Shown: positions 4,959-54,247, counted from the stretch's first letter. The stretch is DNA of 64,000 nt from Rebecca billardiae RCC1528 (GCA_965240325.2 OZ251247.1:930001-994000), one strand, 5' to 3'. A program made the numbers and translations. Notes: a model not told the origin generated them from the sequence alone.

Positions 4959-5469
4959 CCGTGAGTGAGTCGCCAGCGTCATCGGTTCGAGCGAGCAGCA
5001 TGACGAGCAGTCGTAGTCGTCGTTGCTGCTGCGCCGCGGCTTGACGACGATAATAACACGCGACGCGCGCCATATCGTCGCTGGCGCGCAGTGTTCGCAG
5101 CGGCGACCTTGTTGACGATGCGACTACTACGATATTGTGCGCGGCATCGTCAGCACTCCCGATGTTCAAAACAACGCGCGGTCGAAGACGCTGCACGAGA
5201 AGCGCGCGCGACCTGGCCAGCGTGTGCGGACGACGTCCCGCAGCCGGGCGAGGCGCCTCGGAGTTAGTATTGCAGTACATACCATAGCGTCGTGCGCCAC
5301 AGCCGTGGCGACCCACCATCGGGCGCTCATGCTCGTCGGCCTACGAGCCGCCTCGCCACGAGGGTCGCCGCCGCCCGCGAGACGGTAACGCCCTGCTGCT
5401 CACTGCGCGCACAAACTAGCGTACGTCGCACCGCAATATGGGGGTATGTATCGGCCACAACCGCCCGAC

Positions 5470-5762
5470 ACGCCGCCCGCCTCGTCCCGCCCGCCCCGTC
5501 CCGTGCGCCCGCGCGCGCCACACGCGCGCAGCCCGCTTGCAGACGAGCTCATCACCGCGGCGATGCGCGTGGCGCGACACGGCCGGGCTGCTGCTGGGGC
5601 TGCGCGCCCGGCGCGACGCGGCTGCCTGCCGAGCCGATCGCAGCGCCGCGCCTCGCCGCCTCCGCGGCGGGTGGCGGCGGCGGCGGCGGTGGCGCGTGCG
5701 CGCCGCCCGCGCCCGCGCGCGTGTTCGCCGAGGGCGCACACCGGACGCCGAGTACGGGCGGT
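5470..5762 (+). pseudogene. Displaced, degenerate fragment of the last intron/exon of the multi-domain glycan gene
   Basis: Matches about 28893-29190 (CCCGCTCGCAGACGAGCTC...GCGATGCGCGT...ACACGGCCGGGCTGCTGCT...GAGTACG) with small indels. Confidence 0.7.
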
Positions 5763-6154
5763 CGCCCTCAACATTGTACTGCCTCTCATAGAGCGGATCG
5801 TCAGACCGTTAAAAACTGCCGGATGCCATAAATATTACCCCAATACTACTATCTCGCCTGCCTGAGCTGTGTGCGACTGTGCGTCTCTTATTCTTAGTAA
5901 ACTTTATGCAAATGGGTGGAGTACCTGTCTGGTACTCATAATACTCACTGGGGAATCGCACCTGCTTATGAAAACTGGCAACCGATTTGGGCGCCAGAAT
6001 ATGATGTCATTGTTGCGTCCCAGACGCCCAAGGCTTCTCACAAAGTCATCAATGAACGCGCTCGAGCCTCGAACGAGCTCGTGGCCGATCGCAGGCTCAT
6101 CATTTGCCAGGGGCCGCCGCCATCAATCACGCGCGCTCCCCCTTACGCCCGAGC

Positions 6155-9100
6155 ATGTGGCTCTTCTGCGGCAAGAATCCCTGCGGCACGCAAGCCGGTG
6201 TGCGCTCCAGTGACGAGGAGGAGCGTGGCGACGACGGCGCGCCCGAGGCACCGCCCGATGCCCGCGCCACGCTCGTCCAAGATGGCGCCGAGCCGAGCGA
6301 CGCGGCCGCGGGCGGCGACGACGGCGCGCGGCGGGGGGTGCGCGAGCGGCTCGCGGGCTGGGGCGCGGGGCGGTGGCTGCTCGTCGTCGGCGCCGCGTGC
6401 AGCGCTGTCCTCATCACCGGCGCAGCGTACCACTGGCGGCACCACATCAAGGGCTCGCTCAGCCGGCTGCAGCAGCGAGGGACGGCGGACGTGCCCGAGG
6501 ATGCGCGCTGCCTCGGGCGCGTGGGGCGGCAGGACGGGCAGTGGCTCATGGCGCCGGGCTCGACGGTCGAGCACGCTGCGCGCTGGGCCTTTGTGTTGGA
6601 CGCGTCCATCCTCGTCCTCGCCGTCGCCGCGCTGCTGCTGCTGCGCGCGTGGAAGAGCCCGGATGCGGCCGCGTCCACGGCGAAGAGCCTCTTCTCGGCG
6701 GCCATGTCCGCGTTCGACCTGTTCACAGACGCGCTGCTGGCGTCGCAGTGGTGGCGGTGCGCGCACCGGCTGTGGGCGGGCCTCGCCTTCGTCTTCACCG
6801 CCGCGGGCGCGCTGCCCACGCTCCAAGTCGCGCGCGCCGCGGCAGAGGTGGCCGCGCTGCCGCCCGATGCTTACGAGTTTGACCGCAAAGAGGTGGAAGA
6901 GCGGCTGCGCGACGCAAAGGCGCTCGAGGCGACGGTGGAGAGCGCGCCGCAGACGTACCTGCAGGGGTACGCGATGCTGCGCATCGGCGCCGTGCACGCC
7001 ACGCCGCTGGCGCTCGCCTCGCTGCTCTTCTCCGCCTCGATGATTGGCCACCACACGTACGTGTACACCATCAGCAGCGCGCTTGATTTTGCTGGTGGTC
7101 GGCCCACCGTGCAGTGGTGGAGCGTGACCGTGCCCGTGGTCGGCTGGACGGTGGGCGTGGACGACCTGGCGTGCCGCGTGGGCACGGTGATGTCCGTGCT
7201 GTGCCGCGCGCTGACGCACGGCCTCTTCGCCTGCGCGTTCCACAGCTGGCTGCTGGCGGCGCTCTCGGCGGCGGCGCTCGCGCTGGTCGCCTCCGTGCGC
7301 TACAGCGGCCACCTCAAGGTCATGGGTGCACTCGAGCGCGGAGGGCAGCTGGCGGCCTGGCGGAGCGCGGCGTGGGAGGCGGGCATCGTGTACGCCGCCG
7401 TGGGCATGGTCGACCTGAGCTCGGCGGGGTGGCTCGCGCACACGGCGCCCACCCACGTCCTGCTCGGCTGCGCGGAGGCCGCGCTGGCGGTGGCCGCGCT
7501 GCGCTGGCCGTCCGCGTGGCGCGAGGCGCAGAGCGCGCCTGCGCTGGCGGCACTCGCGTGGGCGTGGGGCTGCGCGTGGGTGGCGCACAAGGCCGTCGTC
7601 GTGCGCTTGCTGCAGCTCAAGGCAGATCCAGTGGTCGTCAGCCTCATGTGTGCGCGCGCGCGCGTGGCGACGACGTGGCGCCTGCCGCGGCGGGCTCGGG
7701 CGCGCGCGCGGCGGCGGGCGGGCGGCGCGGCCGCGGGGCGCTGTGCCAGCGGCGCGTGCGGCGCGCTCGCGTGTGCACGGGCGGGCACGCATCGCACGCG
7801 CAAGCTCGACACCCACTCACGCCCCCGCCGCGCGCCCGCTCCTTCCGCCGCGCCTCCCGCAGTTCCAACGGGATCGGCGACGCTGGCGCCACTGCCATCG
7901 CGGACGCCGTGCGCCACAGCCGCTCCCTGCAGAGGCTTGTCCTCCAGTACGTGTGCACGCGCGTGGGGGCGGGGGCGGGGGTGGCGCGGAGGGGCGGGGG
8001 TGGGTGAGCGGGTGCCAGCTGGGGCATGCGCTGCGGAAGCATGTCGAGCGCGCCGCGCCGCGCGCGCGCGCGCCGCGCGCCCTCGCGCGGTGATGTCCGA
8101 GCGCGCGCCGCGCGCGCGGCCGCGTCGGCATGCTCGGGCGCGCGCGCGGCGGCGGGCGGGCGGCGCGGCCGCGGGCGGGCGGGCGGCGCGGCCGTGGGGC
8201 GCTGTGCCAGCGGCGCGTGCGGCTCGCTCGCGCGTGCACGGGCGGGCACGCGCCGCGCGCGCGCGCTCGACACCCACTCACGCCCCCGCCGCGCGCCCGC
8301 CCCTCCCGCCGCGCCTCCCGCAGTGGCAACGGGATCGGCGACGCTGGCGCCACTGCCATCGCGGACGCCGTGCGCCACAGCCCCTCCCTGCAGGAGCTCC
8401 ACCTCGAGTACGTGTGCACGCGCGCGGGAGCGGGCACGGGGGTGGCGCGGAGGGGTGGGGGTGGGTGGGCGGGTGCCAGCCGAGGCATGTGCTGCGGACG
8501 CACGTCGAGCGCGGCGCGCCGCGCGCGCGCGCGCCGCGCGCCCTCGCGCGGTGATGTCCGAGCGCGCGCCGCGCGCGCGGCCGCGTCGGCGGGCTCGGGC
8601 GCGCGCGCTGCGGCGGGCGGGCGGCGCGGCGGCGGGCGGGCGGGCGGCGCGGCCGTGGGGCGCGCTCGCGTGTGCTCGGGCGGGCTCGCACCGCGCGCGC
8701 GCACTCGACACCCACTCACGCCCGCGCCGCGCGCCCGCCCCTCCCGCCGCGCCTCCCGCAGTTTCAACGGGATCGGCGACGCTGGCGCCACTGCCATCGC
8801 GGACGCCGTGCGCCACAGCCGCTCCCTGCAGGAGCTTGTCCTCTAGTACGTGTGCACGCGCGCGGGGGTGGGCGCGGAGGTGGCGCGGAGGGGTGGGGGT
8901 GGGTGGGTGGGCGCCAGCTGGGGCATGTGCTGCGGACGCACGTCGAGCGCTGCGCGCCGCGCGCGCGCGCGCCGCGCGCCCTCGCGCGGTGATGTCCGAG
9001 CGTGCGCCGCGCGCGCGGCCGCGTCGGCGTGCTCGGGCGCGCGCGCTGCGTCGGGCGCGGCCGCGGTGGCGGGGCGCTGTGGCAGCGGCGCAGGCGGCGC

Positions 9101-9290
9101 GCTCGCGCGTGCTCGGGCGGGCACGCTGCGCGTGCGCGCGCTCTGCCCTTGCTCACGCCCCAGCCGCGCGCCCGACACCCGTCCCCCACTGCGCGCCTCC
9201 CGCAGTTACAATCGCCTCAGCGAGGCGGGCAAGAAGGCGGTGCGCGAGGCGTGGGAGCAGAGCGGCAAGGAGGGCAGGCTGGAGCTGTGA
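6155..9290 (+). CDS. XK/Xkr-like multipass membrane protein fused to a C-terminal RI-type LRR array, paralogue A (3 LRR cassette exons)
   Basis: Exons: 6155-7647, 7863-7946, 8324-8407, 8762-8845, 9206-9290 (TGA). All introns are GT-AG and phase 2. XK-family-like motifs are FDLFTDALLA and LEATVESAPQTYLQGY, with many hydrophobic helices. The repeat unit is xNxIGDAGATAIADAVRHSRSLQxLxLx. An apparent TAG at 8844-8846 is removed by splicing (TA|T = Tyr), which supports the model. Confidence 0.85.
7648..9205 (+). repeat. Tandem intron-exon repeat, ~438-461-bp period (LRR cassette array A)
   Basis: Exon starts at 7863, 8324, 8762 and 9206; the introns are near-identical to one another. Confidence 0.9.
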
Positions 9291-10828
9291 TGTGCAGCTC
9301 CGGTGCCGCCGAGAGGCGATGGGTGGGGAGACTGCTTGCGTCGGCAGGGCCTGGGACGAGCACCGGCCCGCCCGCGCTGCGCTGGCGCTGCTCGGGCAGT
9401 GGCAGTGCATGCAGTCGTCGGTGATGAGGGCACCGCGCGGCGCCGTGGGCGGCGCCGCCCAACCGACGAGCGCTTGCGCGCTGCACGGCGGCAGTGACGA
9501 CGGCCGGCATCGTTCGAGAGCGGCGGGCGTAGACGGCGCGGGCGCAGGTCGGCGCGCACAAGTGGAGGCGTCGTTTTTCATTCGATCGGCGTGGCGCCGT
9601 GCGCAGTGCTCGCCTCCGGCTTCCGACTCGACTCGACTCGGCCCAGCGCGCCGCGGGCTCGGCCGGCGCCGCGGCGCGGCGCGCGGTATTGGCCGAGCTC
9701 GCACGCCGCACGGCTACGGTGACGACGGGCTCGGCGGAAAGTGGGTGTCGTCAGCGTTGGCGAAGCTCTGCGCGCACGGGTGGAGGCGTTTCGACCAGGT
9801 CACATGGCGTGGAGCCGTGCTCGCTCGCCGGCTTCGGAAATCGACTCGGTCGGCGCTCAGTCAGCAGCGCGTGCGCGTGGTCGCGCAGAAGAGGCCGCGC
9901 GTGGCGACGCCGCAGCTGCGCAGTGCTGATGTGAGGAGTAGTCATCGCAGCGACGAAACAGCCCAGCAGTGCCGCCCCGCTTCGAATCGGCTTCGATCTC
10001 GCTCGGAGCTGATCGACACCCGGACGATCACGATCGGACCTGTCGTCAGCGTTAATGGTGGTGCGCTCGGCAGCACCACTAGCTGGTGCCGTTCGAAACA
10101 GTGCGCACGACGGCGCACGCAGCAAGCAGCTAGTAAGATGGCGCGGCCGAGCAAGCCGTGTGCATGCAGCTACAGCCTACAGGATCGCGCAGTGGGCGCG
10201 CGCCGCACCACCACTGCTGACCGCACCGCGACGCACGCCCCGCAGAGCCCGGAGCTCGTCGTCAGCGTGACGCCGGCACGGCAGCGCCCACAGAATCCGC
10301 CAGCTCGTCCGGGGCGAGGCGAGCGCCGTCGATTCGCGCCGCGGCACCGAGCTCAGCCGCTCCCGCTGCAGCCGCCGCCGCCGTGAGACTTCACTCGTGC
10401 GACGTCTCCAACGACGTGCTGCGCGAGCTGCACCCTGAAATCGGAGGGGGCCGCCGGCGCGCCATGCTCGCGCGCCTCCCAGCACAGTGAGGATCTGCAT
10501 CGCAGTGGGTCAGCGTGTGCGAAGTGCTGTGCACGTCCACGCGCATGGTGCCACACGACACGACGCTCAATCATCGTCAAGGACAGCCAGCCGCCGCGAG
10601 TAACGCCGCCATCGTTGCTCGGCGGCGGAGAAGAGTACCAGACAGACGTGTGTCCTCTGGTTTTGATGACGATGCTGAAATAAAAGCCGCCCGGGCGCCG
10701 CATCCAAAGTGCCGGAGCCACGGGTTTAAATTGCATGATGATTTACAAGTGCGGCATCTCCGCCGCCGCCGCAGGAGCCAGGACGCAGCGATCCGGTGTG
10801 ACGCTGGCCCACACGCGACGAATCGACG

Positions 10829-11605
10829 ATGGCCGTCATCACCAGCATCAGCTCGGGGGCGGTGGGCGCCGCTGCGCCCACCGCGCGCCCGCACGCGCGT
10901 GCGTGGCGGGGAACGCCGTGGCGAGGGACGCCGTGCCGGGGCGACGTCGGCCCGCGCCCCGCGCCGTGCGCCGCCTCGGCGCCCGCGCGTCGCCCTGTGG
11001 CTGTGGCAGCGCGTGCGCGGCTGCTGCTGCTGCCGCTGCTGCTCGGCGGCGCGACGGGCGCGGCGGCGGCTGCGGCGGCAGCAGCGCCGCCACCGACGTA
11101 CGCGGCGGGGGCGGACGCGCTGCTGCTCGACGACGTGCACGCAGGCGACTTTGTGCTCGGCGCCCGCGCCAGCCTCGCCACCGCACCGCCGCCGCCGGCC
11201 CCGTCCGCGCGCTGCCTCGCCGCTGTAGCAGCGATGCCGCGCGCGCCCGCCGCCGACGGCGGCGGCCCCGGCGCCGGCGGCGACGGGGCGGGGCGCGCGC
11301 GCCCCGCGCCGCTGCTCCCGCCCGAGTGCGCGTGGCAGGCGGCCGCGCTGTGGGCGTTCCCCGCCTCCGGGGTGGGCTGGGTGGGCGCGCTGCTGCAGAG
11401 GGCGGCGGGCTGGGCGGTGGGGGTGGCGCCGGGCGCGGGGAGGGGCGCGGGCGCGGCGGGGCGGCAGGGCGGGCGGACGCGCGGGTGCGAGCACCGCGCG
11501 CTCGCCATCGTCGCCGAGTCCACCGCCACGCCACACGCGGTGCTGCGCCACTGGGCGGGCGCCAACAGGGCGCGCGCCCTCACGCACGCGGCGCCGCGCG
11601 GGCTG

Positions 11606-11644
<39 letters not shown>

Positions 11645-12195
11645 TGGGCGGAGCTGCCGCCGGTGCAGCCGCGCTCGGCGCGCAACATCCCGTGGCACGG
11701 CGCGCAGTCCGAGGCGCTCGCGCCGCACGGCACCGCGCACGCAGCCATCAGGCAAGCCGCGCGAGCGCGCCGCGCCGCCGCCGCCGCCTCAGCCGCGCCG
11801 CGCCCCGCGCGCGGCTGCGGCAGCTCAGCAGCGCGCGGCCGCCTGCCAACCGAGCGCGCGCGTGCCCCTCCGCCCGGACACCCACACCCCCCGCGCGCCA
11901 CGCGCCCCCGCAGCCGCCACCTCGTTGAGTGCAGCGCGTGGCGCCCCGCGCGCGCCCTGCTCGTGGAGCGCTGTCCGTACGCGGCGATCGGCGCGCTGCT
12001 CGGCGCACACGCACACGCGGGGGGCGGCGGCGCGGAGGGCGCGGAGGGCGGGGGGGGCGGTGTTGAGGATGCGGCGGCGGGGGGCTCGCTCGAGCCGGTG
12101 GACGCGGAGGCGACCGCGCTCGAGCTCGCGGCCGACTACGCGGCCGCGTGGGCGAGGTGGGTGCGCACCGCCCGCTGCTGCTGTGCTGCTGCGCT
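10829..12195 (+). pseudogene. 3'-truncated duplicate of the multi-domain glycan gene (sulfotransferase-like part only)
   Basis: Near-identical to 22435-23795. Similarity stops within intron 2, where unrelated sequence begins. Confidence 0.75.
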
Positions 12196-12231
12196 GCTGT
12201 GTGGAAGCACTGTCTGTGGCGCGTGGCACTG

Positions 12232-12885: not shown

Positions 12886-14600
12886 ATGGCACGAGGGGCC
12901 GGTCGGGGCGGCGGGCCGCACGATGGGGTTCGGGCGCACCGCGCCGCCCTGGCGCTGTGCGTGCTCGCGCCGCCCGTGCTGACCGCCGAGCCGCCGCGCG
13001 CGCGCGGCGACGTCGCGGGCGTCCCGGACGTCGGCGTCACGCCCTCGCCGTGCGCGGTGCTGTGGCGCGCCAAGCAGGCGCGCGCGCCGCGCGCGCCGCT
13101 CGGCTCTGTCGCTGCTGCACGGCGAGCACGAGCTGCACGCGGGGGCGAAGCAGTCGGTGTTCGACTTGTTCGAGCCCGAGTGGGCGTGCGAGTCGGAGGA
13201 GCGCCTCGGCGGCCCCGTCTTCCCCCAGCTCGACCCGCCGTACCTCGCGTACGGCGACGGCCCCAAGTGTGTGTGCGCCGTGGACAGGCTGCCCGCGCCC
13301 TGCCTGGTGTACAGCGTGGGCAGCGACGACGACTGGACGTTCGAGGCGGCGGTGCGCAGCCGCACGCCGTGCGAGGTGCACACGTTCGACAGCACGCTCG
13401 CGCGCCGCGGGCTCAGCTTCAGCGGCGCCGCCGTCGCCGCCTTCCACCCGCTCGGGCTGAGCGACCGCGACGGCGCAGACGCGGAGGAGGCGGCGGAGGC
13501 GCGCCGGGCAGAGGCGCGCGCGGCCGCGGCGGCGGCGGCGCGGGCGGGTGACGGTGGCGGTGGTGGTGGCAGCGGCAGCAGTGCTGCGCGGCCCGCCTCC
13601 GCCGGCGCCGCGCCCGCCGCGCCAGCGGGCGCGCGGCGCGGCCTAGAGCCCGGAGTGGCCGAGGCGGAGGGCGGGCCTATGCGCACGCTGCAGTCGATGA
13701 TGCGCGCGCTCGGGCACAGCGGCCGCGTGCTCGACGTGCTCAAGGTGGACTGCGAGGGGTGCGAGTGGCGCGCGCTGCCGCCCGTGCTGCGCGCCATCCG
13801 CGACGGCCGACTGCGCGTCGGCCAGCTGCTCGTGGAGCTGCACATGCAGTGGGAGGCGGGCATCTACGGCCGCCCCAAGTACGCGCGCGCGCTGCCCAAC
13901 GCGAGCGCGCTCTGGCGCGGGGCGGACGGCGCGCGGCTGCGCGCGTTCCACAAGGAGCGCAACGGCTGGGGCTGCGGCGGCTGGCGCTGCGCCGAGTACG
14001 CCTACGCGCGCCATATCGTCGCTGGCGCGGCGCGTGGGCCACGTGCGCGCGCATCGCCGTCACCACCGCCTCGAGCACGCCCGCGCGCGGCGGCGCGCGC
14101 GCGCTCGGCGGCGCACCGCCCAGCAGCGCGCAGCGCGGCCGCGCGCGCGCCAGGGCGGCGAGCGCCTCGGCGGCGCGGGCGGCCTCCGCCGCTGCGCTCC
14201 ATGGGGTTCGGGCGCACCGCGCCGCCCTGGCGCTGTGCGTGCTCGCGCCGCCCGTGCTGACCGCCGAGCCGCCGCGCGCGCGCGGCGACGTCGCGGGTGG
14301 CCTGGACGTCGGCGTCACGCCCTCGCCGTGCGCGGTGCTGTGGCGCGCCAAGCAGGCGCGCGCGGCGCGCGCGCGCCGCGCGCGCCGCTCGGCTCGCAAC
14401 GGCTGGGGCTGCGGCGGCTGGCGCTGCGCCGAGTACGCCTTTGTGCACGAGGCGCACGCGTGCAGGGCGTTCGTCTCCACGCACTGCCCGGGGCGCCGCG
14501 CTGAGGCGGAGGTGTGCGGCGGCGCCGGCGCCGCCGCCGCGCGCCGATCTGCTCGACGACGTGCGTCCGCCGCTACTCCGCCTGCAAGATTGCTCTGATG
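12886..14600 (+). pseudogene. Methyltransf_22/METTL24-like SAM-dependent methyltransferase, internally rearranged
   Basis: The frame at 13157-14003 has FDLFEPEWAC, GDGPKCVC, CLVYSVGSDDDWTFE, CEVHTFD, LDVLKVDCEGCEW and QLLVELH. The C-terminus (CAEYAFVHEAHAC) is displaced to 14398-14500 by an insertion of duplicated 5' sequence. Confidence 0.75.
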
Positions 14601-15284
14601 GGCGGCCTAGTAGTAGTGCCCCGCCGTGAGTCCGCGGCACGGCCGTGGCCGCCCTGGTGCCCGTACCCGTGCTGAGTAGTAGATAAGTCCCGCGCGGCGC
14701 ACGCGCGCGTCGTAACGGTCATGATGTCGCGTCTTCGCGCGGGCCAAATCACGGGCTGCGTGAATCAGTGGCGGTTCGAGCGAGCAGCTAATGAGCAGCC
14801 AGTAGTCGCGTCGTCGTAGTTGCTGCTGCGCCGCGGCTTGACGATAACAACACGCGACGCGCGCCATATCGTCGCTGGCGCGCAGTGTTCGCAGCGGCGA
14901 CCTTGTTGACGATGCGACTGCGACTACGATATATATATTGTGCGCGGCATCGTCAGCACTCCCGACCGATGTTCAAAACAACGCGCGGTCGAAGACGCTG
15001 CACGAGAAGCGCGCGCGACCTGGCCAGCGTGTGCGGACGACGTCCCGCGGCCGGGCGAGGCGCCTCGGAGTTAGTACTGCAGTACATACCATAGCGTCGT
15101 GCGCCACTGCCGTGGCGACCCACCATCGGGCGCTCATGCTCGTCGGCCTACGAGCCGCCTCCGGCCACGAGGGTCGCCGCCGCGGCCCGCGAGACGGTAA
15201 CGCCCTGCTGCTCACTGCGCGCACAAACTAGCGTACATCGCACCGCAATATGGGGGTATGTATCGGCCACAACCGCCCGACCCG

Positions 15285-15575
15285 CCGCCCGCCTCGTCCC
15301 GCCCGCCCCGTCCCGTGCGCCCGCGCGTGCCGCGTGCGCGCAGCCCGCTTGCAGACGAGCCGCCGTCACCGCGGCGATGCGCGTGGCGCGACACGGCCGG
15401 GCTGCTGCTGGGGCTGCGCGCCCGGCGCGACGCGGCTGCCTGCCGAGCCGATCGCAGCGCCGCGCCTCGCCGCCTCCGCGGCGGGTGGCGGCGGCGGCGG
15501 CGGTGGCGCGTGCGCGCCGCCCGCGCCCGCGCGCGTGTTCGCCGAGGGCGCACAGGACGCCGAGTACGGGCGGTC
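15285..15575 (+). pseudogene. Second displaced fragment of the last exon of the glycan gene
   Basis: Paralogous to 5470-5762 and to about 28893-29190. Confidence 0.7.
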
Positions 15576-15966
15576 GCCCTCAACATTGTACTGCCTCTCA
15601 TAGAGCGGATCGTCAGACCGTTAAAAACTGCCGGATGCCATTAATATTACCCCAATACTACTATCTCGCCTGCCTGAGCTGTGTGCGACTGTGCGTCTCT
15701 TATTCTTAGTAAACTTTATGCAAATGGGTGGAGTACCTGTCTGGTACTCATAATACTCACTGGGGAATCGCACCTGCTTATGAAAACTGGCAACCGATTT
15801 GGGCGCCAGAATATGATGTCATTGTTGCGTCCCAGACGCCCAAGGCTTCTCACAAAGTCATCAATGAACGCGCTCGAGCCTCGAACGAGCTCGTGGCCGA
15901 TCGCAGGCTCATCATTTGCCAGGGGCCGCCGCCATCAATCACGCGCGCTCCCCCTTACGCCCGAGC

Positions 15967-18900
15967 ATGTGGCTCTTCTGCGGCAAGAACCCCTGCGGCA
16001 CGCAAGCCGGCGTGCGCTCCAGTGACGAGGAGGAGCGTGGCGACGACGGCGCGCCCGAGGCACCGCCAGATGCCCGCGCCACGCTCGTCCAAGATGGCGC
16101 CGAGCCGAGCGACGCGGCCGCGGGCGGCGACGACGGCGCGCGGCGGGGGGTGCGCGAGCGGCTCGCGGGCTGGGGCGCGGGGCGGTGGCTGCTCGTCGTC
16201 GGCGCCGCGTGCGGCACTGTCCTCCTCACCAGCGCAGCGTACCACTGGCGGCACCACATCAAGGGCTCGCTCAGCCTGCTGCAGCAGCGAGGGACGGCGG
16301 ACGTGCCCGAGGATGCGCGCTGCCTCGGGCGCGTGGGGCGGCAGGACGGGCAGTGGCTCATGGCGCCGGGCTCGACGGTCGAGCACGCTGCGCGCTGGGC
16401 CTTTGTGTTGGACGCGTCCATCCTCGTCCTCGCCGTCGCCGCGCTGCTGCTGCTGCGCGCGTGGAAGAGCCCGGATGCGGCCGCGTCCACAGCGAAGAGC
16501 CTCTTCTCCGCGGCCATGTCCGCGTTCGACCTGTTCACAGACGCGCTGCTGGCGTCGCAGTGGTGGCGGTGCGCGCACCGGCTGTGGGCGGGCCTCGCCT
16601 TCGTCTTCACCGCCGCGGGCGCGCTGCCCACGCTCCAAGTCGCGCGCGCCGCGGCAGAGGTGGCCGAGCTCGCCGCGGAAGAGGTGGCCGCGGAGCCACC
16701 CGATGCTGAGGTGGAGTATCACCGCAAAGAGGCGGAAGGGAAGCTGCGCGACGCGAAGGCGCTCGAGGCGACGGTGGAGAGCGCGCCGCAGACGTACCTG
16801 CAGGGGTACGCGATGCTGCGCATCGGCGCCGCGCACGCCACGCCGCTGGCGCTTGCCTCGCTGCTCTTCTCCGCCTCGATGATTGGCCACCACACGTACG
16901 TGTACACCACCAGCAGCGTGGCTGTTGATGCTGCTGGTCGGCCCGCCGTGCAGTGGTGGAGCGTGACCGTGCCCGTGGTCGGCTGGGCGGTGGGTTTGGA
17001 CGACCTGGCGTGCCGCGTGGGCACGGTAGCGTCCGTGCTGTGCCGCGCGCTGACGCACGGCCTCTTCGCCTGCGCGTTCCACAGCTGGCTGCTGGCGGCG
17101 CTCGCTGCGGCGGCGCTCGCGCTGGTCGCCTCCGTGCGCTACAGCGGCCACGTCGAGGTCATGGGTGCACTCGAGCGCGGAGGGCAGCTGGCGGCCTGGC
17201 GGAGCGCGGCGTGGGAGGCGGGCATCGTGTACGCCGCCGTCGGCATGGTCGACCTGAGCTCGGCGGGGTGGCTCGCGCGCACGGCGCCCACCCACATCCT
17301 GCTCGGCTGCGCGGAGGCAGCGCTGGCGGGGGCCGCGCTGCGCTGGCCGTCCGTGTGGCGCGAGGCGCAGAGCGCGCCGGCGCTCGCGGCACTCGCGTGG
17401 GCGTGGGGCTGCGCGTGGGTGGTGCACAAGGCCGTCGTCGTGCGCTTGCTGCAGCTCAAGGCAGATCCAGTGTTCGTCGACCTCAGGTGTGCGCGCGCGC
17501 GCGTGGCGACGACGCGGCGCCTGCCGCGGCGGGCTCGGGCGCGCGCGCGGCGGCGGGCGGGCGGCGCGGCAGTGGGGCGCTGTGCCAGCGGCGCGTGCGG
17601 CGCGCTCGCGCGTGCTCGGGCGGGCACGCATCGCGCACGTGCGCTTGACACCCACTCACGCCCCCGCCGCGCGCCCGCCCCTCCCGCCGCGCCTCCCGCA
17701 GTGACAACCAGATCGGCGACGCTGGCGCCACTGCCATCGCGGACGCCGTGCGCCACAGCCGCTCCCTGCAGACGCTTGTCCTCGGGTACGTGTGCACGCG
17801 CGCGGGGGCGGGGGCGGGGGTGGCGCGGAGGGCCGGGGGTGGGTGAGCGGGCGCCAGCCGGAGCATGTGGTGCTGCGGACGCACGTCGAGCGCGGCGCGC
17901 CGCGCGCGCGCGCGCCGCGCGCCCTCGCGCGGTGATGTCCGAGCGTGCGCCGCGCGCGCGGCCCGTCGGCGGGCTCGGGCGCGCGCGCGGCGGCGGGCGC
18001 GCGCGCGGCGGCGGGCGGGTGGCGCGGCCGCGGGGCGCTGTGGCAGCGGCGCGTGCGGCGCGCTCGCGCGTGCTCGGGCGAGCACGCATCGCGCGCGCGC
18101 GCTCGACACCCACTCACGCCCGCGCCGCGCACCCGCCCCTCCCACCGCGCCTCCCGCAGTGACAACCAGATCGGCGACGCTGGCGCCACTGCCATCGCGG
18201 ACGCCGTGCGCCACAGCCGCTCGCTGCAGACGCTCTGGCTCGAGTACGTGTGCACGCGCGCGGGGCCGGGCGCGGGGGTGGCGCGGAGGGGCGGGGGTGG
18301 GTGGGCGGGCGCCAGCCGGGGCATGTGCTGCGGGCGCACGTCGAGTGCGGCGCGCCACGCGCGCGCGCGCCGCGCGCCCTCGCGCGGTGATGTCCGAGCG
18401 TGCGCCGCGCGCGCGGCCGCGTCGGCGGGCTCGGGCGCGCGCGCGGCGGCGGGCGGGCGGCGCGGCCGCGGGGCGCTGTGGCAGCGGCACGGGCGGCGCG
18501 CTGGCGCGTGCACGGGTGGGCATGCGCCGCGCGCGCGCGCCCCACACCCACTCACGCCCCCACCGCGCGCCCGCCCCTTCCGCCGCGCCTCCCGCAGTTC
18601 CAACGCGATCGGCGACGCTGGCGCCACCGCCATCGCGGACGCAGTGCGCCACAGCCGCTCCCTGCAGTGGCTCCGCCTCAGGTACGTGTGCACGCGCGCG
18701 GGGGCGGGCGCGGGGGTGGCGCGGAGGGGCGGGGCTGGGTGGGCGGGCGCCAGCCGGGGCATGCGCTGTGGACGCACGTCGAGCGCGGCGCGCCGCGCGC
18801 GCGCGCGCCGCGCGCCCTCGCGCGGTGATGTCCGAGCGTGCGCCGCGCGCGCGGCCGCGTCGGCGGGCTCGGGCGCGCGCGCGGCGGCGGGCGGGCGGCG

Positions 18901-20877
18901 CGGCCGCGGGGCGCTGTGGCAGCGGCGCGTGCGACGTGCTCGCGCGTGCTCGGGCGAGCACGCGCCGCACGCGCGCGCCCGACACCCACTCACGCCCGCG
19001 CGGCGCGCCCGCCCCTCCCGCCGCGCCTCCCGCAGTGACAACCAGATCGGCGACGCTGGCGCCACTGCCATCGCGGACGCCGTGCGCCACAGCCGCTCGC
19101 TGCAGGAGCTCTGGCTCGAGTACGTGTGCACGCGCGCGGGGGCGGGCGCGGGGGTGGCGCGGAGGGGCGGGGGTGGGTGGGCGGGCGCCAGCCGGGGCAT
19201 GCGCTGTGGACGCACGTCGAGCGCGGCGCGCCGCGCGCGCGCGCGCCGCGCGCCCTCGCGCGGTGATGTCCGAGCGTGCGCCGCGCGCGCGGCCGCGTCG
19301 GCGGGCTCGGGCGCGCGCGCTGCGACGCGCGGGCGGCGCGGCCGCGGGGCGCTGTGGCAGCGGCGCGTGCGGCTTGCTCGCGCGTGCTCGGGCGGGCACG
19401 CGCCGCGCGCGCGCGCTCGACACCCACTCACGCCCGCGCGGCGCGCCCGCCCCTCCCGCCGCGCCTCCCGCAGTACCAACCAGATCGGCGACGCTGGCGC
19501 CACTGCCATCGCGGACGCAGTGCGCCACAGCCGCTCCCTGCAGGGGCTTGACCTCCGGTACGTGTGCACGCGCGCGGGGGCGGGGGCGGGGGTGGCGCGG
19601 AGGGGCGGAACTGGGTGGGCGGGCGCCAGCCGGGGCATGCGCTGTGGAAGCATGTCGAGTGCGGCGCGCCGCGCGCGCGCGCGCCGCGCGCCATCGGGCG
19701 GGCGGTGATGTCCGAGCGCGCGCCGCGCGCGCGGCCGCGTCGGCGGGCTCGGGCGCGCGCGCTGCGGCGGGCGGGCGGCGCGGCCGCGGGGCGCTGTGGC
19801 AGCGGCGCGTGCGGCGCGCGTGCACGGGCGGGCACGCATCGCACGTGCGCGCTCGACACCCACTCACGCCCGCGCCGCGCGCCCGCCCCTCCCGCCGCGC
19901 CTCCCGCAGTCGCAACCAGATCGGCGACGCTGGCGCCACCGCCATCGCGGACGCCGTGCGCCACAGCCGCTCCCTGCAGGAGCTCTGGCTCAAGTACGTG
20001 TGCACGCGCGCGGGGGCGGGGGCGGGGGTGGCGCGGAGGGGCGGGGGTGGGTGAGCGGGTGCCAGCTGGGGCATGCGCTGCAGAAGCATGTCGAGTGCGG
20101 CGCGCCGCGCGCGCGCGCGCCGCGCGCCCTCGCGCGGTGATGTCCGAGCGTGCGCCGCGCGCGCGGCCGCGTCGGCGGGCTCGGGCGCGCGCGCGGCGGC
20201 GGGCGGGCGGCGCGGCCGCGGGGCGCTGTGGCAGCGGCGCGTGCGGCGCGCTCGCGCGTGCTCGGGCGGGCACGCGCCGCGCGCGCGCGCCCTACACCCA
20301 CTCACACTCGCGCGGCGCGCCCGCCCCTCCCGCCGCGCCTCCCGCAGTTCCAACCAGATCGGCGACGCTGGCGCCACTGCCATCGCGGACGCCGTGCGCC
20401 ACAGCCGCTCCCTGCAGACGCTTGGCCTCGGGTACGTGTGCACGCGCGCGGGGGCCGGGGCGGGGCTGGCGTGGAGAGGCGGGGGTGGGTGGGTGGGCGC
20501 CAGCCGGGGCATGCGCTGCGGACGCACGTCGAGCGCGGCGCGCAGCGCGCGCGCGCGCCGCGCGCCCTCGCGCGGTGATGTCCGAGCGTGCGCCGCGCGC
20601 GCGGCCGCGTCGGCGGGCTCGGGCGCGCGCGCGGCGGCGGGCGGGCGGCGCGGCCGCGGGGCGCTGTGGCAGCGGCGCGTGCGGCTTGCTCGCGCGTGCA
20701 CGGGCGGGCACGCTGCGCGCGCCGCGCTCTGCCCTTGCTCACGCTCCCGCCGCGCGCCCGACACCCGTACCCCGACCGCTCGCCTCCCGCAGTTCCAATG
20801 ACCTCAGCGAGGCGGGCGAGAAGGCGGTGCGCGAGGCGTGGGAGCAGAGCGGCAAGGAGTACGGGCTGGATGTGTGA
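15967..20877 (+). CDS. XK/Xkr-like multipass membrane protein fused to a C-terminal RI-type LRR array, paralogue B (7 LRR cassette exons)
   Basis: Exons: 15967-17486, 17702-17785, 18160-18243, 18598-18681, 19036-19119, 19474-19557, 19910-19993, 20348-20431, 20793-20877 (TGA). Every internal exon is 84 nt, bounded by CCCGCAG|T and NN|GTACGT. The XK-like motifs are the same as in paralogue A. Confidence 0.85.
17487..20792 (+). repeat. Tandem intron-exon repeat, ~438-bp period (LRR cassette array B)
   Basis: Successive exon-start spacings are 458, 438, 438, 438, 436, 438 and 445 bp. Confidence 0.9.
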
Positions 20878-22434
20878 TGTGCACCTCCGCTGCTGCCGAG
20901 AGGCGATGGGTGGGGAGACTGCTTGCGTCGGCAGGGCGTGGGACGAGCACCGGCCCACCCGCGCTGCGCTGGCGCTGCTCGGGCAATGGCAGTGCATGCA
21001 GTCGTCGGTGATGCGGGCACCGCGCGGCGCCGTGGGCGGCGCCGCGCAACTGACGAGCGCTCGCGCGCCGCACGGCGGCAGTGACGACGGCCGTCATCGT
21101 TCGAGAGCGGCGGGCGTAGACGGCGCGGGCGCAGGTCGGCGCGCACAAGTGGAGGCGTCGTTTTCCATTCGATCGGCGTGGCGCCGTGCGCAGTGCTCGC
21201 CTCCGGCTTCCGACTCGACTCGACTCGGCCCAGCGCGCCGCGGGCTCTGCCGGCGCCGCGGTGCGGCACGCGGTATTGGCCGAGCTCGCGCGCCGCACGG
21301 CTACGGTGACGACGGGCTCGGCGGAAAGCGGGTGTCGTCAGCGTTGGCGAAGCTCTGCGCGCGCACGGGTGGAGGCGTTTCGACCAGGTCACATGGCGTG
21401 GAGCCGTGCTCGCTCGCCGGCTTCTGACTCGACTTGGTCCGGGCGCTCAGTCAGCTAGCTAGCAGCACTGCGTGCGCGTGGTCCCGCAGAAGAGGCCACG
21501 CGTGGCGACGCCGCAGCTGCGCAGTGCTGATGTGAGGAGTAGTCATCGCAGCGACGAAGCAGCCCAGCAGTGCCGCCCCGCTTCGAATCGGCTTCGATCT
21601 CGCTCGGAGCTGATCGACACCCGGACGATTGGCACGATCGCGGACCTGTCGTCAGCGTGGTGCGCCGGGCACCACTAGCTGGTGCCGTTCGAAACAGTGC
21701 ACGACGGCGCACTACGCAAGCAGCTAGTAAGATGGCGCGGCCGAGCAAGCCGTGTGCATGCAGCTACAGCCTACAGGATCGCGCAGTGCGGGCGCGCGCC
21801 GCACCACCACTGCTGACCGCACCGCGACGCCACGCGGCCCCGAGCCGAGCTCGTCGTCAGCGTGACGCCGCACGGCAGCGCCCACAGAATCCGCCAGCTC
21901 GTCAGGGGCGAGGCGAGCGCCGTCGATTCGCGCCGCGGCACCGAGCTCAGCTGCTCCCGCTGCAGCCGCCGCCGCCGTAAGACTTCACTAGTGCGACGTC
22001 TCGTCCAACGACGTGCTGCGCGAGCTGCACCCTGAAATCGGAGGGTCGGCCGCCGGCGCGCCATGCTCGCGCGCCTCCCAGCACAGTGAGGATCTGCATC
22101 GCAGTGGGTCAGCGTGTGCGAAGTGCTGTGCACGTCCACGCGCATGGTGCCACACGACACGACGCTCAATCATCGTCAAGGACAGCCAGCCGCCGCGAGT
22201 AACGCCGCCATCGTTGCTCGGCGGCGGAGAAGAGTACCAGACAGACGTGTGTCCTCTGGTTTTGATGACGATGCTGATCGAAATAAAAGCCGCCCGGGCG
22301 CCGCATCCAAAGGGCCGGAGCCACGGGTTGAAATTGCATGATGATTTACATCAAGTGCGGCATCTCCGCCGCCGCCGCAGGAGCCAGGACGCAGCGATCC
22401 GGTGTGACGGTGGCCCACACGCGACGAATCGACG

Positions 22435-23211
22435 ATGGCCGTCATCACCAGCATCAGCTCGGGGGCGGTGGGCGCCGCTGCGCCCACCGCGCGCCCGCAC
22501 GCGCGTGCGTGGCGGGGGACGCCGTGGCGAGGGACGCCTCGCAGGGGCGACGTCGGCCCGCGCCCCGCGCCGTGCGCCGCCTCGGCGCCCGCGCGTCGCC
22601 CTGTGGCTGTGGCAGCGCGTGCGCGGCTGCTGCTGCTGCCGCTGCTGCTCGGCGGCGCGACGGGCGCGGCGGCGGCGGCGGCGGCCGCAGCGCCGCCACC
22701 GACGGGGGCGGCGGGGGCGGACGCGCTGCTGCTCGACGACGTGCACGCGGGCGACTTTGTGCTCGGCGCCCCCGCCAGCCTCGCCACCGCACCGCCGCCG
22801 CCGGCCCCGTCCGCGCGCTGCCTCGCCGCGGTGGCAGCGATGCCGCGCGCGCCCGCCGCCGACGGCGGCGGCCCCGGCGCCGGCGGCGAAGGGGCGGGGC
22901 GCGCGCGCCCCGCGCCGCTGCTCCCGCCCGAGTGCGCGTGGCAGGCGGCCGCGCTGTGGGCGTTCCCCGCCTCGGGGGTGGGCTGGGTGGGCGCGCTGCT
23001 GCAGAGGGCGGCGGGCTGGGCGGTGGGAGTGGCGCCGGGCGCGGGGAGGGGCGCGGGCGCGGCGGGGCGGCAGGGCGGGCGGACGCGCGGGTGCGAGCAC
23101 CGCGCGCTCGCCATCGTCGCCGAGTCCACCGCCACGCCGCACGCGGTGCTGCGCCACTGGGCGGGCGCCAACAGGGCGCGCGCGCTCACGCACGCGGCGC
23201 CGCGCGGGCTG

Positions 23212-23247
<36 letters not shown>

Positions 23248-24775
23248 TGGGCGGAGCTGCCGCCGGTGCAGCCGCGCTCGGCGCGCAACATCCCGTGGCA
23301 CGGCGCGCAGTCCGAGGCGCTCGCACCGCACGGCACCGCGCACGCAGCCATCAGGCGAGCCGCGCGAGCGCGCCGCGCCGCCGCCTCTGCCTCAGCCGCG
23401 CCGCGCCTCGCGCGGCTTCGGCAGCTCAGCAGCGCGCGGCCGCCTGCCAACCGCGCGCGCGCGTGCCCCTCCGCCCGGACACCCACCCCCCGCGCGCCGC
23501 GCGCCCGCGCAGCCGCCACCTCGCCGAGTGCAGCGCGTGGCGCCCCGCGCGCGCCCTGCTCGTGGAGCGCTGTCCGTACGCGGCGATCGGCGCGCTGCTC
23601 GGCGCACACGCACACGCGGGGGGCGGCGGCGCGGAGGGCGCGGGGGGCGGGGGGGGCGGTGTTGAGGATGCGGCGGCGGGGGGCTCGCTCGAGCCGGTGG
23701 ACGCGGAGGCGACCGCGCTCGAGCTCGCGGCCGACTACGCGGCCGCGTGGGCGAGGTGGGTGCGCACCGCCCGCTGCTATGTGCTGCTGCGCTGCCCCGC
23801 TGCACACGCCGCGGCCGCCCGCCGCACCGCTCTGGCTCGTCCCGGCTGCCGCGCGCTGCCGCCCACACGGCCGCGCACGCCACGCACTCAGTGCGCCCGC
23901 GCGTGTGTGCGCGCGTGTGCGCGCGCGCCCGCAGCCACAAGGCGCTGCTGCGCGAGGCGGAGGAGGCGGCGGTGCGCGCGCGCGCGGAGGCGGCGCGCGC
24001 GGCGCTGGGCGCGGGGCGGGGCGGCGCGCGCGCGCCGCCCGACGCCGCCACCGCCGCGCTGCTCGGCGCGGACGCGCGGCGCGCGCGGCACGCCGCGCTG
24101 AGCGGCGCGGACACGCGCGGCGCGGGCGGTGCCGTGCTGCCGCTGAGCCACCTGCTCGAGCCGCCGGGCGGCGGCGGCGAGGGCGGCGGGTGCGCGGCCG
24201 CGCTCGCGCGCGCGCTGGCGTGGCTGGGCGCACCGCCTCCGCCGGGCGAGGCGTGGGGCGCGGAGGTGTGGGGGCGCGCGCACAGCGCCGCCGCCGCCAA
24301 CGCAAGTGGCGGCGCCGCGGAGGCGGATGCGGCGGCGGCGCGCTGGCTGCCGCGCGCGCGCGCCGCGTGCGCCGCGCTGCCGGCGCCGGCGGTGCTGCGC
24401 AGCGGCGCGCCCGCGCCCGCACCCGCGCCGCTCGCGCCCGCCTCCGCCCGCCCCGCCGCCGCCCCCGCCGCCCCCGCGCGCGGCGGCGTGTGGCGCGGGC
24501 GCGCGCTCACGTGCCGCGTGTGGGGCGCGCTCGGCCACATCGCGGCGCAGCTCGGCCACACGCCGCCGCACGGCCACCGGTGCGGGCGCGGCGCGGACGC
24601 GCGGGCGTGGGCGCGGCGGTGCGGACGGCTGCGGGGTCGGCCCCTCGCCCTTGCAGGCCGTTGCGTGCGCTGCGCGGGCGCGGCCGTGCGCGCCGGGTGC
24701 AGCCGCTGCCCGCGCGGCTCACGGTGCGCTGCGCCCTCCGCCCCCGCTGCCGCCGCTACCGCTGCCTGCGGCCGC

Positions 24776-24808
<33 letters not shown>

Positions 24809-27800
24809 CTGATTGGCTGGCGCTGTGCTGCTGCTGCCCTCTGATTGGCCGGCGCTGTGCTGCTGCTGCTGCGCAGCTGCCAGCAGCGCGACGAGCTGCT
24901 GCTGGCGCTGGGCAGGAGGGCGGCCCCCGCCTCGCCCGACGGGCGCACTGTGCTACTCACCTCGACCAACCTGCAGGTGCAACACGGCACACGGCACACT
25001 GCCTAGCGCACACCCCAGCATCACACCCCGGCACAGCGCGCACTCGGGTGGCGGCGTTGTTGAGCGCACGCCGCCCGCCCGCCGCCCGCCCGCGCGCGCG
25101 CGTGCCGCGCCGCTGCCGCGTGTGCGCCTGTGCAGTACCTGGACGTGTGGCTCAACTGGCTGCTCGCCGTGCGCACGCACGCGCCCCCGCTCGCGGCCGC
25201 GGTGGTGGTGGGCGCGCTCGACTGGCGCGCGCACGACGCGCTGCGCGCGCTGCACGCGCCCGCCTTCCCGCTGCTGCCGCGGTACCGGCGCGGCACCCTG
25301 CGCGCGGCGGAGGGGCAGCGCGCGCTGGACGGCGTGTGGGTGGAGCGCGGCGAGGTGACGCTGACCCTCCTCCGCGCGGGGCTGGGCGTGCTCCTCTGCG
25401 ACACAGACGCCGTGTTCACACGGGACGCCCTCACGCCGCTGCTCAGCCTGAGCGCGCACGCGCACGCGCACGCGGGCGCGGCCTCCGCCACGGCCCCTCT
25501 CGCCGTGGGCGCGGACGCGGTCGCCTCCGCCGGCACCTTCCCCCGCTGGGCCGCGCGCGCGCTGGGCGGCAGCAGCGCGGTGATGGGCCTGGTCCTGCTC
25601 GCGCCCACGCGCGCGGCAACAGGGCTGCTGGGCGCGGCGCAGAGGCTGGCGCACGCGGTGGGGGACGACCAGACGGCGTTCAACGCGCAGCTCGCCGCGG
25701 CGGAGGAGGTGCTCGTGGCGGACGCGCCGCTCGGCCGCGCGCGCGCCGCCGCGCCGGCCGCGCCGCCGGTGGCGCGGCTGGTGCGAGCGACGACGCGCGG
25801 CGCCGCGGCGCCCTGGCCGCACGGCGGAGGGCGCGCGGGCGGCTGGGCGGTGCGCGTGCTCATCCTGCCAGAGGCGCTCGTCGTGCGCAACTGCACGCCA
25901 AGGCTGCGCACGCTGCGCGCGGCGGCGGCGGCGGCGCGCGGCGGCGGCTCGGCGCGCGGCGGCGGCGGCGACGCGGCGGGTGCGGCGGGCGGCGCGCTGG
26001 GCGTCCATTACGTCGACGATGACGGCGGCGGCGCGGGCGTGCACGGCGGGGGCGGCGCCGGCGCCGCCGCCGGCTTGCGGCTCTCGAGCAGTGGCACCGG
26101 TGGCGATGGTGGCAGCCGCAATGGCAGCAGCAGCAATAGCGGCAGCGGCAGCAGCGGCCGCTTCTCGAGCGCGCTGGTGGCGCACTGCCTCTCCTCCAAG
26201 TCCGGGGTGGCCAAGTGGGAGCAGCTCGAGGCGGCGGGGCTGTGGCGCTGCCCGGGCGCGTGGGCGCGCGAGTGGAGCGGCGCGGGCGCGCGCGAGCCCG
26301 CGCGCCGCGCGCCGGGCCTCGCGGCGCCCGCGGCGGCGCCGGCCGGCGGCGGCGCGCTCGGCGCGCCGCCGCGCGCCGCCGCGCTCGGCGCGCCGCTCGC
26401 GGCGGCAAACATCAGCGCGGAGGGCGGCGCGCCGCCCGAGCCCGGCACGCCGGACGCCGAGCCCGCCGCGTTTGGCGCGGGCCTGGACCGCGTGCTCGCC
26501 GCCTCGCGCGTCGCCGCCTCGGTGGTGGTCTGCTCCGAGCTGCTGGCTGCACCCGCGCCGCTGGCGGAGGGCGGCGGCGCGGCGGCGGGCGCGGCGGCGG
26601 CGGCGGCGGCGGCGGCGGAGGCGGTGCGCAGCGGGGCGCGCGGCGGCGGCGGCGCGGCGGGAGCTGCCGCCGCCGGCCTGCTCGAGGCCGGCGGGGCGAC
26701 CGGCGGCGGCGGCGCGTCGGCGGAGGCGGCGGGCGGCGGCGCCGTGCCCGCGGCCGAGTGGTGGCGCGCGCTCGGCGCGCTCGGCGCCGGCCTCGGCCGC
26801 GGCGCGGCGGGCGCGGGCGTGGCGCTCGAGCTCGTAGCGGTGCGCTGGGCGGGCGTGGGCGAGGGCCCGGCCGAGTCGGCGGCGATCGACGGCGCGGCGG
26901 CGCGCGCGCTGCGCGCCGCGCTGCCCGCCGCGCACTCGGCCGCGCTGCCCGCCGTGCGCCTCGTGACGGTGCCGCGCGCCGCGGCCGCGCTCGGCGCGCC
27001 GCTCGGCGCGGCGGCGCCGAGCGCGCTCCTCAACGCGGGCGTGCGCCTCGCCACGTCGGAGCGCGTGCTGCTATGCAGCGCGGCCGTGCGCCTCGCGCCC
27101 GGGCTCTTCCGCGCGCTGCGCACGCTGCAGCGCGCGGGCGTCGGCCGCGCCGCGCACGTGCTCGGCGCGTGCGCGCTGCCCGGCGCGGCCGGCGCGGCCG
27201 CGCTGCGCGCCCTCACCGAGCGCGGCGCCGCGGCGGCGGCGGCGGCGGCGCGCTGCGGCCGGCTCGGCGCGCCGAGCGGCGCGGCGGGGATGCTGCTGCC
27301 GCGCGCGATGTGGGCGGCGGCGCGCGGCATGCCCGAGGGGCCCGTCGTGCAGCCGCACGCCGACCGGTGCGCGCGGCACCGCGCACCGCGCGCCGCGACA
27401 CACCGCGACCACGCGCCGCCGCCCTGCCCCGCCCGCTCACACTGCGCGCCCGCCGCGCCGCCGCCCGCCGCGCGCCGCGGCCGCAGCTACCTCGCGCACC
27501 GGCTGTCCGCGCGCGACGTGTCGGTGGGCTGGCTCGACTGCGGCGGCCTCGGCACGCAGCCGTGCGCGTACGCGCCGGGCGGCGCGGGCGGCGCGCGCTG
27601 GTGGCGCGTGGGCGCGGCCACGCTGCGCGAGCGCGACTCGGTGGTGGGCGCGCGCGCGCGGCACGTGGCCGAGCTCGCCGCCAACAGGCGCGCGCGCGAG
27701 GCGGCGGCGGCGCGCGCGCGCGCGGCGGCCGCGTCGGCGCGCGGCGGCGCGCCGCCCGACGCGAGCGGCCCCGCGAGCCCGACGCCCCCCGGCGGCGAGC

Positions 27801-53811: not shown

Positions 53812-53847
<36 letters not shown>

Positions 53848-54210
53848 GGTTGGCGGCGGTGCGGCCGCGCTCGGCGAGCCCGCCCGACGTCGGCGGCGGC
53901 GGCGGCGCGCGGCTGGGCGTGGGCTCGCCGCTCCGCCGCGGCGGCTCGCCGCCGCCGCCCGCGCCGCCGCACTCCCCCGCGCGCGCCGCCGGCAGCGCGC
54001 AGCAGCAGCAGCCGCCGCACGCGCGGCCGCCGTCCGCCGCGGCGCGCGCGTCGCGCGCCGCGGCCGAGGCGGCGCTGCACACGCGGTACGGCGCGGCGGC
54101 GGCGGCGGAGGAGGCGGACGTGGCGCGCGGGGTGGCGCGGCAGGCGGCGCCGACGCCGCTCGGCGAGGCGTCGGCGCGCACGCCGCGCGCATCGCTCGTC
54201 CTCGGCTGGC

Positions 54211-54247
<37 letters not shown>

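Follow-up and report, generated by a model that had tools for sequence, protein, structure and literature searches.

The question raised by this locus is whether a single gene can couple a membrane protein of the XK/Xkr family to a rapidly diversifying recognition module, and what such a protein would do. The locus lies in a stretch of 64,000 nucleotides (nt) of Rebecca billardiae RCC1528 (GCA_965240325.2 OZ251247.1:930001-994000), which is here called the window and along which all positions are counted. The window is very rich in guanine and cytosine (GC; 60-88% per 2-kb step) and has the character of alga-like eukaryotic sequence. On its plus strand a gene, named gene B, runs from an ATG at 15967 to a stop at 20877, and its joined exons give a single uninterrupted open reading frame (ORF) of 730 amino acids (aa), predicted to encode an XK-related membrane domain followed by leucine-rich repeats (LRR). 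That gene B is a real, lineage-restricted and tandemly duplicated eukaryotic gene is shown or strongly indicated, and the gene model and the family assignments, taken jointly, are in our view quite probably correct. The best overall explanation that we can offer is a diversified XK-LRR gene, in which the LRR would serve as an intracellular recognition or regulatory module for the XK domain; we give this a little less than an even chance.

Gene structure and the leucine-rich repeat cassettes

The original prediction described seven 84-nt symmetric exons lying between near-identical introns, with an invariant scaffold and a series of quoted strand motifs, and all of these were reproduced. The parts of gene B are the following.

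15967-17486 (1520 nt), plus strand: exon 1, encoding the 506-aa N-terminal region, with a GT donor at 17487
17487-17701 (215 nt), plus strand: intron 0, GT..AG
17702-20431, plus strand: cassette array of seven exons of 84 nt, phase 2, each encoding one putative 28-aa LRR of the ribonuclease inhibitor (RI) type
17702-17785, 18160-18243, 18598-18681 and 19036-19119, plus strand: cassettes 1 to 4
19474-19557, 19910-19993 and 20348-20431, plus strand: cassettes 5 to 7
20432-20792 (361 nt), plus strand: last intron, GT..AG, its 3' part diverged from the array introns
20793-20877 (85 nt), plus strand: terminal exon, stop included, a degenerate C-terminal LRR or cap (SNDLSEAGEKAVREAW...)

A second gene, paralogue A, was found through the recurrence of the first-exon start string at 6155.

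6155-9290, plus strand: paralogue A, 609 aa, same layout, three cassettes
6155-7647, plus strand: first exon of paralogue A
7863-7946, 8324-8407 and 8762-8845, plus strand: cassettes of paralogue A
9206-9290, plus strand: terminal exon of paralogue A

All eight introns of gene B are GT..AG, every exon boundary is in phase 2, and every intron ends in a common pyrimidine-rich acceptor (...CCTCCCGCAG). Over both paralogues this holds for 12 of 12 introns, in identical phase, with 24 of 24 splice sites intact. Tandem Repeats Finder describes the array of gene B as a 438-nt period in 7.3 copies with 91% matches. The six inter-cassette introns of gene B measure 352-374 nt and are 92-97% identical to each other (89-97% when both paralogues are compared), and intron 0 is 82-89% identical to them. 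The cassette exons are all symmetric, so that the skipping of any one would keep the frame.

After splicing, gene B contains eight in-register 28-aa repeats with the consensus LxxLxLxxNxI. The end of exon 1 falls at the x-L-x-L point where all the cassettes end too, in the same phase, and the exon supplies the first half-repeat (VFVDL-S). The strands read VDL-S-DNQI, TLVL-G-DNQI, TLWL-D-SNAI, WLRL-S-DNQI, ELWL-D-TNQI, GLDL-R-RNQI, ELWL-N-SNQI and TLGL-G-SNDL, and the scaffold I-G-D-A-G-A-T-A-I-A-D-A-V-R-H-S-R-S-L-Q is invariant in seven of the seven cassettes. Searches were made with single cassettes and with a profile of the ten cassettes of both paralogues. With single cassettes the sole Pfam family was LRR_6 (PF13516), at 13.9-17.8 bits against a cut-off of 23.4, a shortfall that arises because each exon carries half of the profile register. 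The ten-cassette profile had one match in the PDB, the radial spoke protein 15 (RSP15) of Chlamydomonas (E 1.6e-6), an intracellular, axonemal protein whose repeats align to the cassette motif NxIGDxGAxAxAD...SLxxLxL. The proposal of one RI-type LRR per symmetric exon is thus supported by the spliced register and by the RSP15 match.

We considered whether exon 1 and the array might be separate transcription units, or the array a non-coding tandem repeat. The exon structure of both paralogues was read from genomic sequence alone, and at such a GC content long ORFs are uninformative: one of 566 aa lies antisense to exon 1, and long ORFs traverse the array in several frames of both strands, the 438-nt unit being a multiple of three. 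Such an artefact is nevertheless very improbable in our judgement. The LRR motif is reconstituted solely across the proposed junctions, and no other ATG from which the array could start is evident. In codon-position GC the cassettes (0.73/0.52/0.91 for positions 1, 2 and 3) match exon 1 (0.75/0.56/0.91), while the introns are flatter at about 0.86. The splicing of exon 1 to the cassettes is indicated only indirectly, by the match in phase, the half-repeat in exon 1, the homology of intron 0 to the cassette introns, the identical arrangement of paralogue A and the direct XK-LRR contiguity in a related contig, L004, that is described below.

Two other readings of the array were rejected. Read-through translation does not hold, as the frame of exon 1 stops at 18162 and the LRR periodicity needs splicing. 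Junctional diversity at the splice joints was also discarded: all downstream exons begin with T, the split codon is NN+T and is set by the upstream exon alone, and splicing therefore adds no diversity of its own. On the minus strand a 1093-aa ORF (17483-20764) runs antisense through the entire array, most likely as an artefact that arises from composition and periodicity.

Diversification, homogenisation and duplication of the locus

The original prediction placed the variable sites of the cassettes at the x positions of the LRR motif. We observed that variation among the ten cassettes is limited to five codons, which occupy the x positions 3, 5, 7, 8 and 10 of L-x-x-L-x-L-x-x-N-x-I and in which non-synonymous change is in large excess, the ligand face being assigned here by motif and not by structure. 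In these face codons (15 nt) the nucleotide diversity is 0.44-0.48, 11 of the 15 sites are polymorphic and the non-synonymous divergence (dN) is about 1.2. The scaffold (69 nt) has a diversity of 0.026-0.029 (0.11-0.13 at 4-fold sites) with 5 of 69 sites polymorphic, and the introns a diversity of 0.057-0.069 with 72 of 347; both fractions differ from that of the face (p 2.5e-7 and p 3e-5, respectively, Fisher). Polymorphic sites carry about three alleles at the face versus about two in the introns. In the scaffold dN is 0.004 against a synonymous divergence (dS) of 0.095 (dN/dS about 0.04), a difference that shows the cassettes to be under strong constraint at the protein level.

The introns are mosaic, 140 of 210 informative site pairs failing the four-gamete test, which implies that gene conversion or unequal exchange is active and that intron identity is not a clean clock. 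That the length of the array is altered by unequal exchange (three versus seven cassettes) and that the array is homogenised by gene conversion is shown or strongly indicated. As the introns are homogenised in this way and provide no clean neutral clock, the face diversity could also be variation that is old and free of constraint and that conversion leaves standing. On both readings it is the predicted ligand face, assigned by us from the motif and from structural knowledge of LRR proteins, at which diversity is specifically kept up. Most innate immune receptors use diversifying LRR arrays as their recognition modules. We lean, by a little more than an even chance, towards a role in ligand recognition, with diversifying selection acting on it. 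Should the gene have no part in immunity, the locus is still a clean case in which concerted evolution and the diversification of particular sites act only a few bases apart.

The same observations have to be read against a constitutive adaptor, in which an XK-like anchor or adaptor would carry an ordinary LRR scaffold and the hypervariability would reflect free x positions with concerted evolution elsewhere. The x positions are variable in all LRR proteins, RI-like LRRs are often structural, and the best PDB match of the cassettes is the axonemal RSP15; homogenisation is active, as the mosaic introns indicate, and the first-ranked fold match of exon 1 in the AlphaFold database, human XK, is named there an endoplasmic reticulum membrane adapter. 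The face diversity, however, is near saturation, with about three alleles per site and a dN of about 1.2, against about 6% in introns a few bases away, and the paralogues differ entirely in their face sets and also in repeat number. We regard the adaptor as unlikely, with a real minority share of our belief.

Paralogue A and gene B belong to a segmental duplication, whose two copies are 93.4-93.5% identical by self-BLAST.

4983-12197: copy 1, matching copy 2
14772-23795, plus strand: copy 2, comprising gene B and its flanks (about 1.2 kb on the upstream side, about 2.9 kb on the downstream side)

The identity is unevenly distributed. Immediately before the two ATGs, 555 nt (5600-6154 versus 15412-15966) are 99.8% identical and the first 82 codons show zero amino-acid differences, while elsewhere the identity is 96.3% in the coding exon, 94% in intron 0 and 96% in the downstream flank. 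The highly identical 5' stretch suggests that the promoter and the 5' end either were covered by a recent conversion tract or are strongly constrained. In the arrays the two genes have wholly different sets of face residues, with three cassettes (four LRR strands) in A versus seven (eight strands) in B, and their terminal exons share 77% protein identity. A 36-nt cassette core occurs ten times in the window, where shuffled sequences give an expectation of zero, and all ten copies are on the plus strand and within A and B; no cassettes or remnants outside these two genes were found on either strand of the 64-kb window. Long ORFs in the remainder of the duplicated block had no Pfam match. The two copies of the duplication are separated by a unique spacer of about 2.6 kb, which contains a transfer RNA gene for Arg (CCG) at 14153-14228.

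The first exons of A and B differ at 56 sites, spread evenly over the codon positions (19/20/17), and by two indels of 24 and 3 nt that keep the frame; their dN/dS is 0.83 (bootstrap 0.46-1.57). At the 105 positions conserved in the family only 2 of 33 replacements were observed versus 7 expected, and dN/dS is about 0.38 at these positions versus about 0.88 elsewhere. By this measure the conserved core of exon 1 is constrained and the remainder is fast-evolving. The pattern fits a fast birth-and-death family, and decay also has room.

Decay is the substance of another explanation, namely that these are young duplicates drifting to pseudogenes, either unexpressed or expressed without function. 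It would account for the dN/dS of 0.83 in exon 1, for the even spread of its differences over the codon positions and for the broken state of two relatives (L001 and L004), and it agrees with the great rarity of the family (four matches in 1.84 billion representatives); moreover an intact ORF carries little weight at such GC. What speaks against it is the preservation of all the splice sites, all the frames and 10 of 10 cassettes, the frame-preserving nature of the indels between the paralogues, the low dN/dS of the scaffold, the avoidance of family-conserved positions by the replacements in exon 1 and the near-perfect identity of the upstream 555 nt. We judge this explanation to be improbable.

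The XK-related domain, its relatives and a possible mechanism

By hydropathy exon 1 encodes two extra hydrophobic segments (aa 73-93 and 140-169), and after them comes an XK-related membrane domain at about aa 170-500. The original prediction had assigned it to the XK/Xkr proteins, and this identification held. The Pfam profile XK-related (PF09815) scores 31.8 bits with B and 29.5 bits with A, above the threshold of 24.8, although only profile positions 121-237 are covered; the homologues P0001 and P0002 reach 51.8 and 48.5 bits over positions 3-288. The motif ExxxESxPQxxLQxY is present in exon 1 and aligns with the corresponding part of XKR9 (rat) and XK (human). A HMMER profile of the family returned from the PDB only XKR9 (7p14) and XK (9yg5), weakly (E 0.17 and 1.6) and by way of ExxPQxxLQxY. 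In the ESM-Atlas, 83 of the 100 nearest clusters are XK-related, the top one scoring 0.90 with 201 of 256 features shared. NCBIfam and Rfam scans gave no match.

The XK fold was taken to consist of two repeats, in each of which four transmembrane helices are accompanied by a further helix that enters the bilayer only in part. The AlphaFold2 models of exon 1 are poor, with a predicted local distance difference test (pLDDT) of 45.6 from the single sequence and 46.6 from a 5-sequence alignment. With these models the top three Foldseek matches in the PDB are XKR9 (twice) and Xkr4. In the AlphaFold and Swiss-Prot collection human XK ranks first (query 166-502), and XKR5, XKR6 and XKR8 have a probability of 0.92-0.99. 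The fold matches have E values of 0.01-0.2 and TM scores of only 0.28-0.41, which are low because the models of exon 1 are poor. No reliable residue-level alignment of exon 1 to XKR8 was obtained. Taken together, the Pfam match and the converging, individually weak results from the PDB, Foldseek and the language model make the membership of exon 1 in the XK/Xkr family well supported at the sequence level.

The last predicted helix lies at about aa 470-497, and the first LRR strand follows some 9 residues later and opens an LRR region of about 225 aa. At the other end, the two hydrophobic segments, together with the N-terminus of the relative P0005, which by eye resembles a signal peptide, suggest an N-terminal ectodomain and one transmembrane helix before the XK core.

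The family to which exon 1 belongs is extremely rare, as phmmer, run exhaustively over 1.84 billion representatives, returned only four relatives. The two full-length ones, P0001 and P0002 (which shares its cluster with P0005 from MMETSP), are without LRR; among the relatives in the protein collections only a fragment, P0004, has LRR, and no intact database protein with both XK and LRR was found. Word-indexed protein searches with exon 1, with the family alignment (A1) and with P0001 returned only P0001 itself, candidates having probably been swamped by words rich in Ala and Arg. Metagenome contigs had no match to the exact cassette core or to the XK alignment, and viral contigs had none to the XK alignment.

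In contig L004 (JGI sample 3300016802, from an accession range that we take to be culture transcriptomes) an XK-like C-terminus leads directly into an RI-type repeat and a tail like the last exon of gene B, without introns; the contig has two frame breaks, and its support is accordingly weak. The nearest relative elsewhere, L001:3061-3675 (Logan ERR14847148), is about 65% identical and belongs to a related organism whose contigs have about 64-68% GC. It is decayed, with in-frame stops and the middle of the XK domain deleted, and has no LRR. The samples holding L001 also carry the intact LRR-less XK-related gene of P0001, which is placed beside a glutaredoxin gene.

XK/Xkr proteins are, to our knowledge, known almost entirely from animals, and in them proteolysis or phosphorylation of a short tail turns on scrambling. 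In XKR9 (PMC8298096) and XKR8 (PMC10938166) the C-terminal tail that follows the eighth transmembrane helix is cytoplasmic, plugs a pocket and inhibits the protein, and the plug is released by caspase cleavage or phosphorylation. Since this C-terminus is cytoplasmic, the LRR of gene B would by homology be cytosolic and would sit where the short tail plugs and autoinhibits XKR9 and XKR8. We propose that the variable LRR may be an intracellular recognition or regulatory module which binds a variable protein ligand, and that this binding could control the handling of lipids by the XK domain, either as scrambling or as recruitment of lipid-transfer machinery. A recognition-gated scramblase is plausible by analogy with the tail plug of XKR8 and XKR9. 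As a specific claim, however, the gating of a scramblase or death output by the LRR seems unlikely to us, and its strong form, ligand-gated scrambling or death, would be equally unlikely or somewhat more so.

The most elaborate version is a sensor and executioner in one polypeptide, where a hypervariable cytosolic LRR would take the place of the caspase-cleaved tail and the binding of a protein from a pathogen or virus would directly free the membrane domain of its plug, setting off phospholipid scrambling or cell death in a unicellular alga. The differing LRR faces of the paralogues would then be different specificities, and the exchange of exon cassettes would make new ones. We consider this version quite unlikely.

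Several of the results weigh against the reading of gene B as a diversified XK-LRR gene with a recognition or regulatory LRR. Scrambling has been shown for only some members of the XK family, and the structure models of exon 1 are poor. Exon 1 has a dN/dS of 0.83 with differences spread evenly over the codon positions, the face diversity could be old, and the exon structure comes from genomic sequence in which long ORFs mean little. Of the two closest relatives outside this locus, L001 is decayed and L004 is frame-broken.

If the fusion is natural, it would suggest a new coupling of recognition to membrane-lipid output. It would also be a testable candidate for the way in which microalgae sense intracellular threats and respond with membrane remodelling or death, and would bear on the termination of blooms by viruses.

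Other features of the window and comparison with known systems

Apart from the two paralogues, the window contains several repeats and a few recognizable coding regions.

33-1422 and 3570-4958: two direct copies of about 1.4 kb, 95% identical and 3.5 kb from each other
25130-28813 and 34712-35719: ORFs with matches to Nucleotid_trans (PF03407, glycosyltransferase-like, 29 bits) and to GFO_IDH_MocA oxidoreductase (79 bits), probably belonging to multi-exon genes
49347-54922: 88% GC, ORFs of great length in several frames (the longest 1805 aa) with no Pfam match; diverged repeats lie within the stretch at spacings of about 400 and 690 nt (about 72% identity), and it could be either a gene of low complexity or non-coding
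59683-61956: tandem array of a 110-nt unit in about 6 + 10 copies, 95-97% matches, relatively AT-rich with a strong A-over-T skew; the unit contains inverted motifs of GGGCAGAAAAGCCCGGG type
62005-64000: tandem array of a 208-nt unit (421-nt higher order) in about 9.5 copies, 93% matches, running off the end of the window

Compared with known proteins, the membrane part of gene B is closest to the Xkr scramblases (XKR8, XKR9, Xkr4 and CED-8), which are its top structural and sequence matches and with which it shares PF09815 and the region of ExxPQxxLQxY. By homology it may also share a regulatory element that follows the final transmembrane helix, on the cytoplasmic side. In the scramblases this element is a short tail with a caspase site that plugs the cytoplasmic pocket (PMC8298096, PMC10938166), whereas here an LRR of four or eight strands is found. 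Gene B has in addition about 170 aa more at the N-terminus, in which the two hydrophobic segments lie, and its identity to these proteins is only about 11-15%. It does not have the short tail of the caspase-activated Xkr4/8/9; no search was aimed at caspase-type sites.

Human XK, the first-ranked AlphaFold database match of gene B over nearly the whole domain (with a model of low pLDDT), is the partner of VPS13A, and the binding uses a cytosolic loop. It illustrates that an XK-family protein can have an adaptor role through cytosolic protein-protein contacts, and unlike gene B it is without LRR. RSP15 has in common with the cassettes the consensus NxIGDxGAxAxAD...SLxxLxL, but it is soluble and axonemal, its repeats have diverged, and it has neither a membrane domain nor near-identical cassettes.

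For the array itself there are two precedents. In Tetrahymena, young LRR genes consist of tandem 90-bp exons with phase-2 introns and split codons, unequal crossing-over expands their arrays, and some have been joined to further domains, for example a protein kinase (PMC6564038). They differ from gene B in the length of the exons (90 bp versus 84 nt) and in belonging to a ciliate, and a fusion to XK is not reported. In the exon-shuffled LRR-ROCO and NB-ARC-TPR genes of Ectocarpus, which are candidate receptors, each repeat likewise occupies one exon of fixed length (72 nt for the 24-aa LRR) between homologous introns, the number of repeats varies, positively selected sites lie on the concave face and exons with a length multiple of three are treated as 'phase 0' pairs (PMC3341825, PMC11378527). 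The effectors there are a ROC-COR GTPase, a kinase or NB-ARC, while gene B has an XK membrane domain and phase-2 repeats of the RI type (28 aa, 84 nt).

The architecture of the array is consequently already known in kind, and in this respect the original prediction was not describing something new; its XK family, LRR class and variable sites stood, with the splicing indicated as set out above. The XK partner appears to be undescribed: no description of an XK-LRR combination was found in the literature or in the protein collections searched, in agreement with what had been predicted. Gene B would thus extend the design of one LRR per exon to a third eukaryotic lineage and to a new effector domain.

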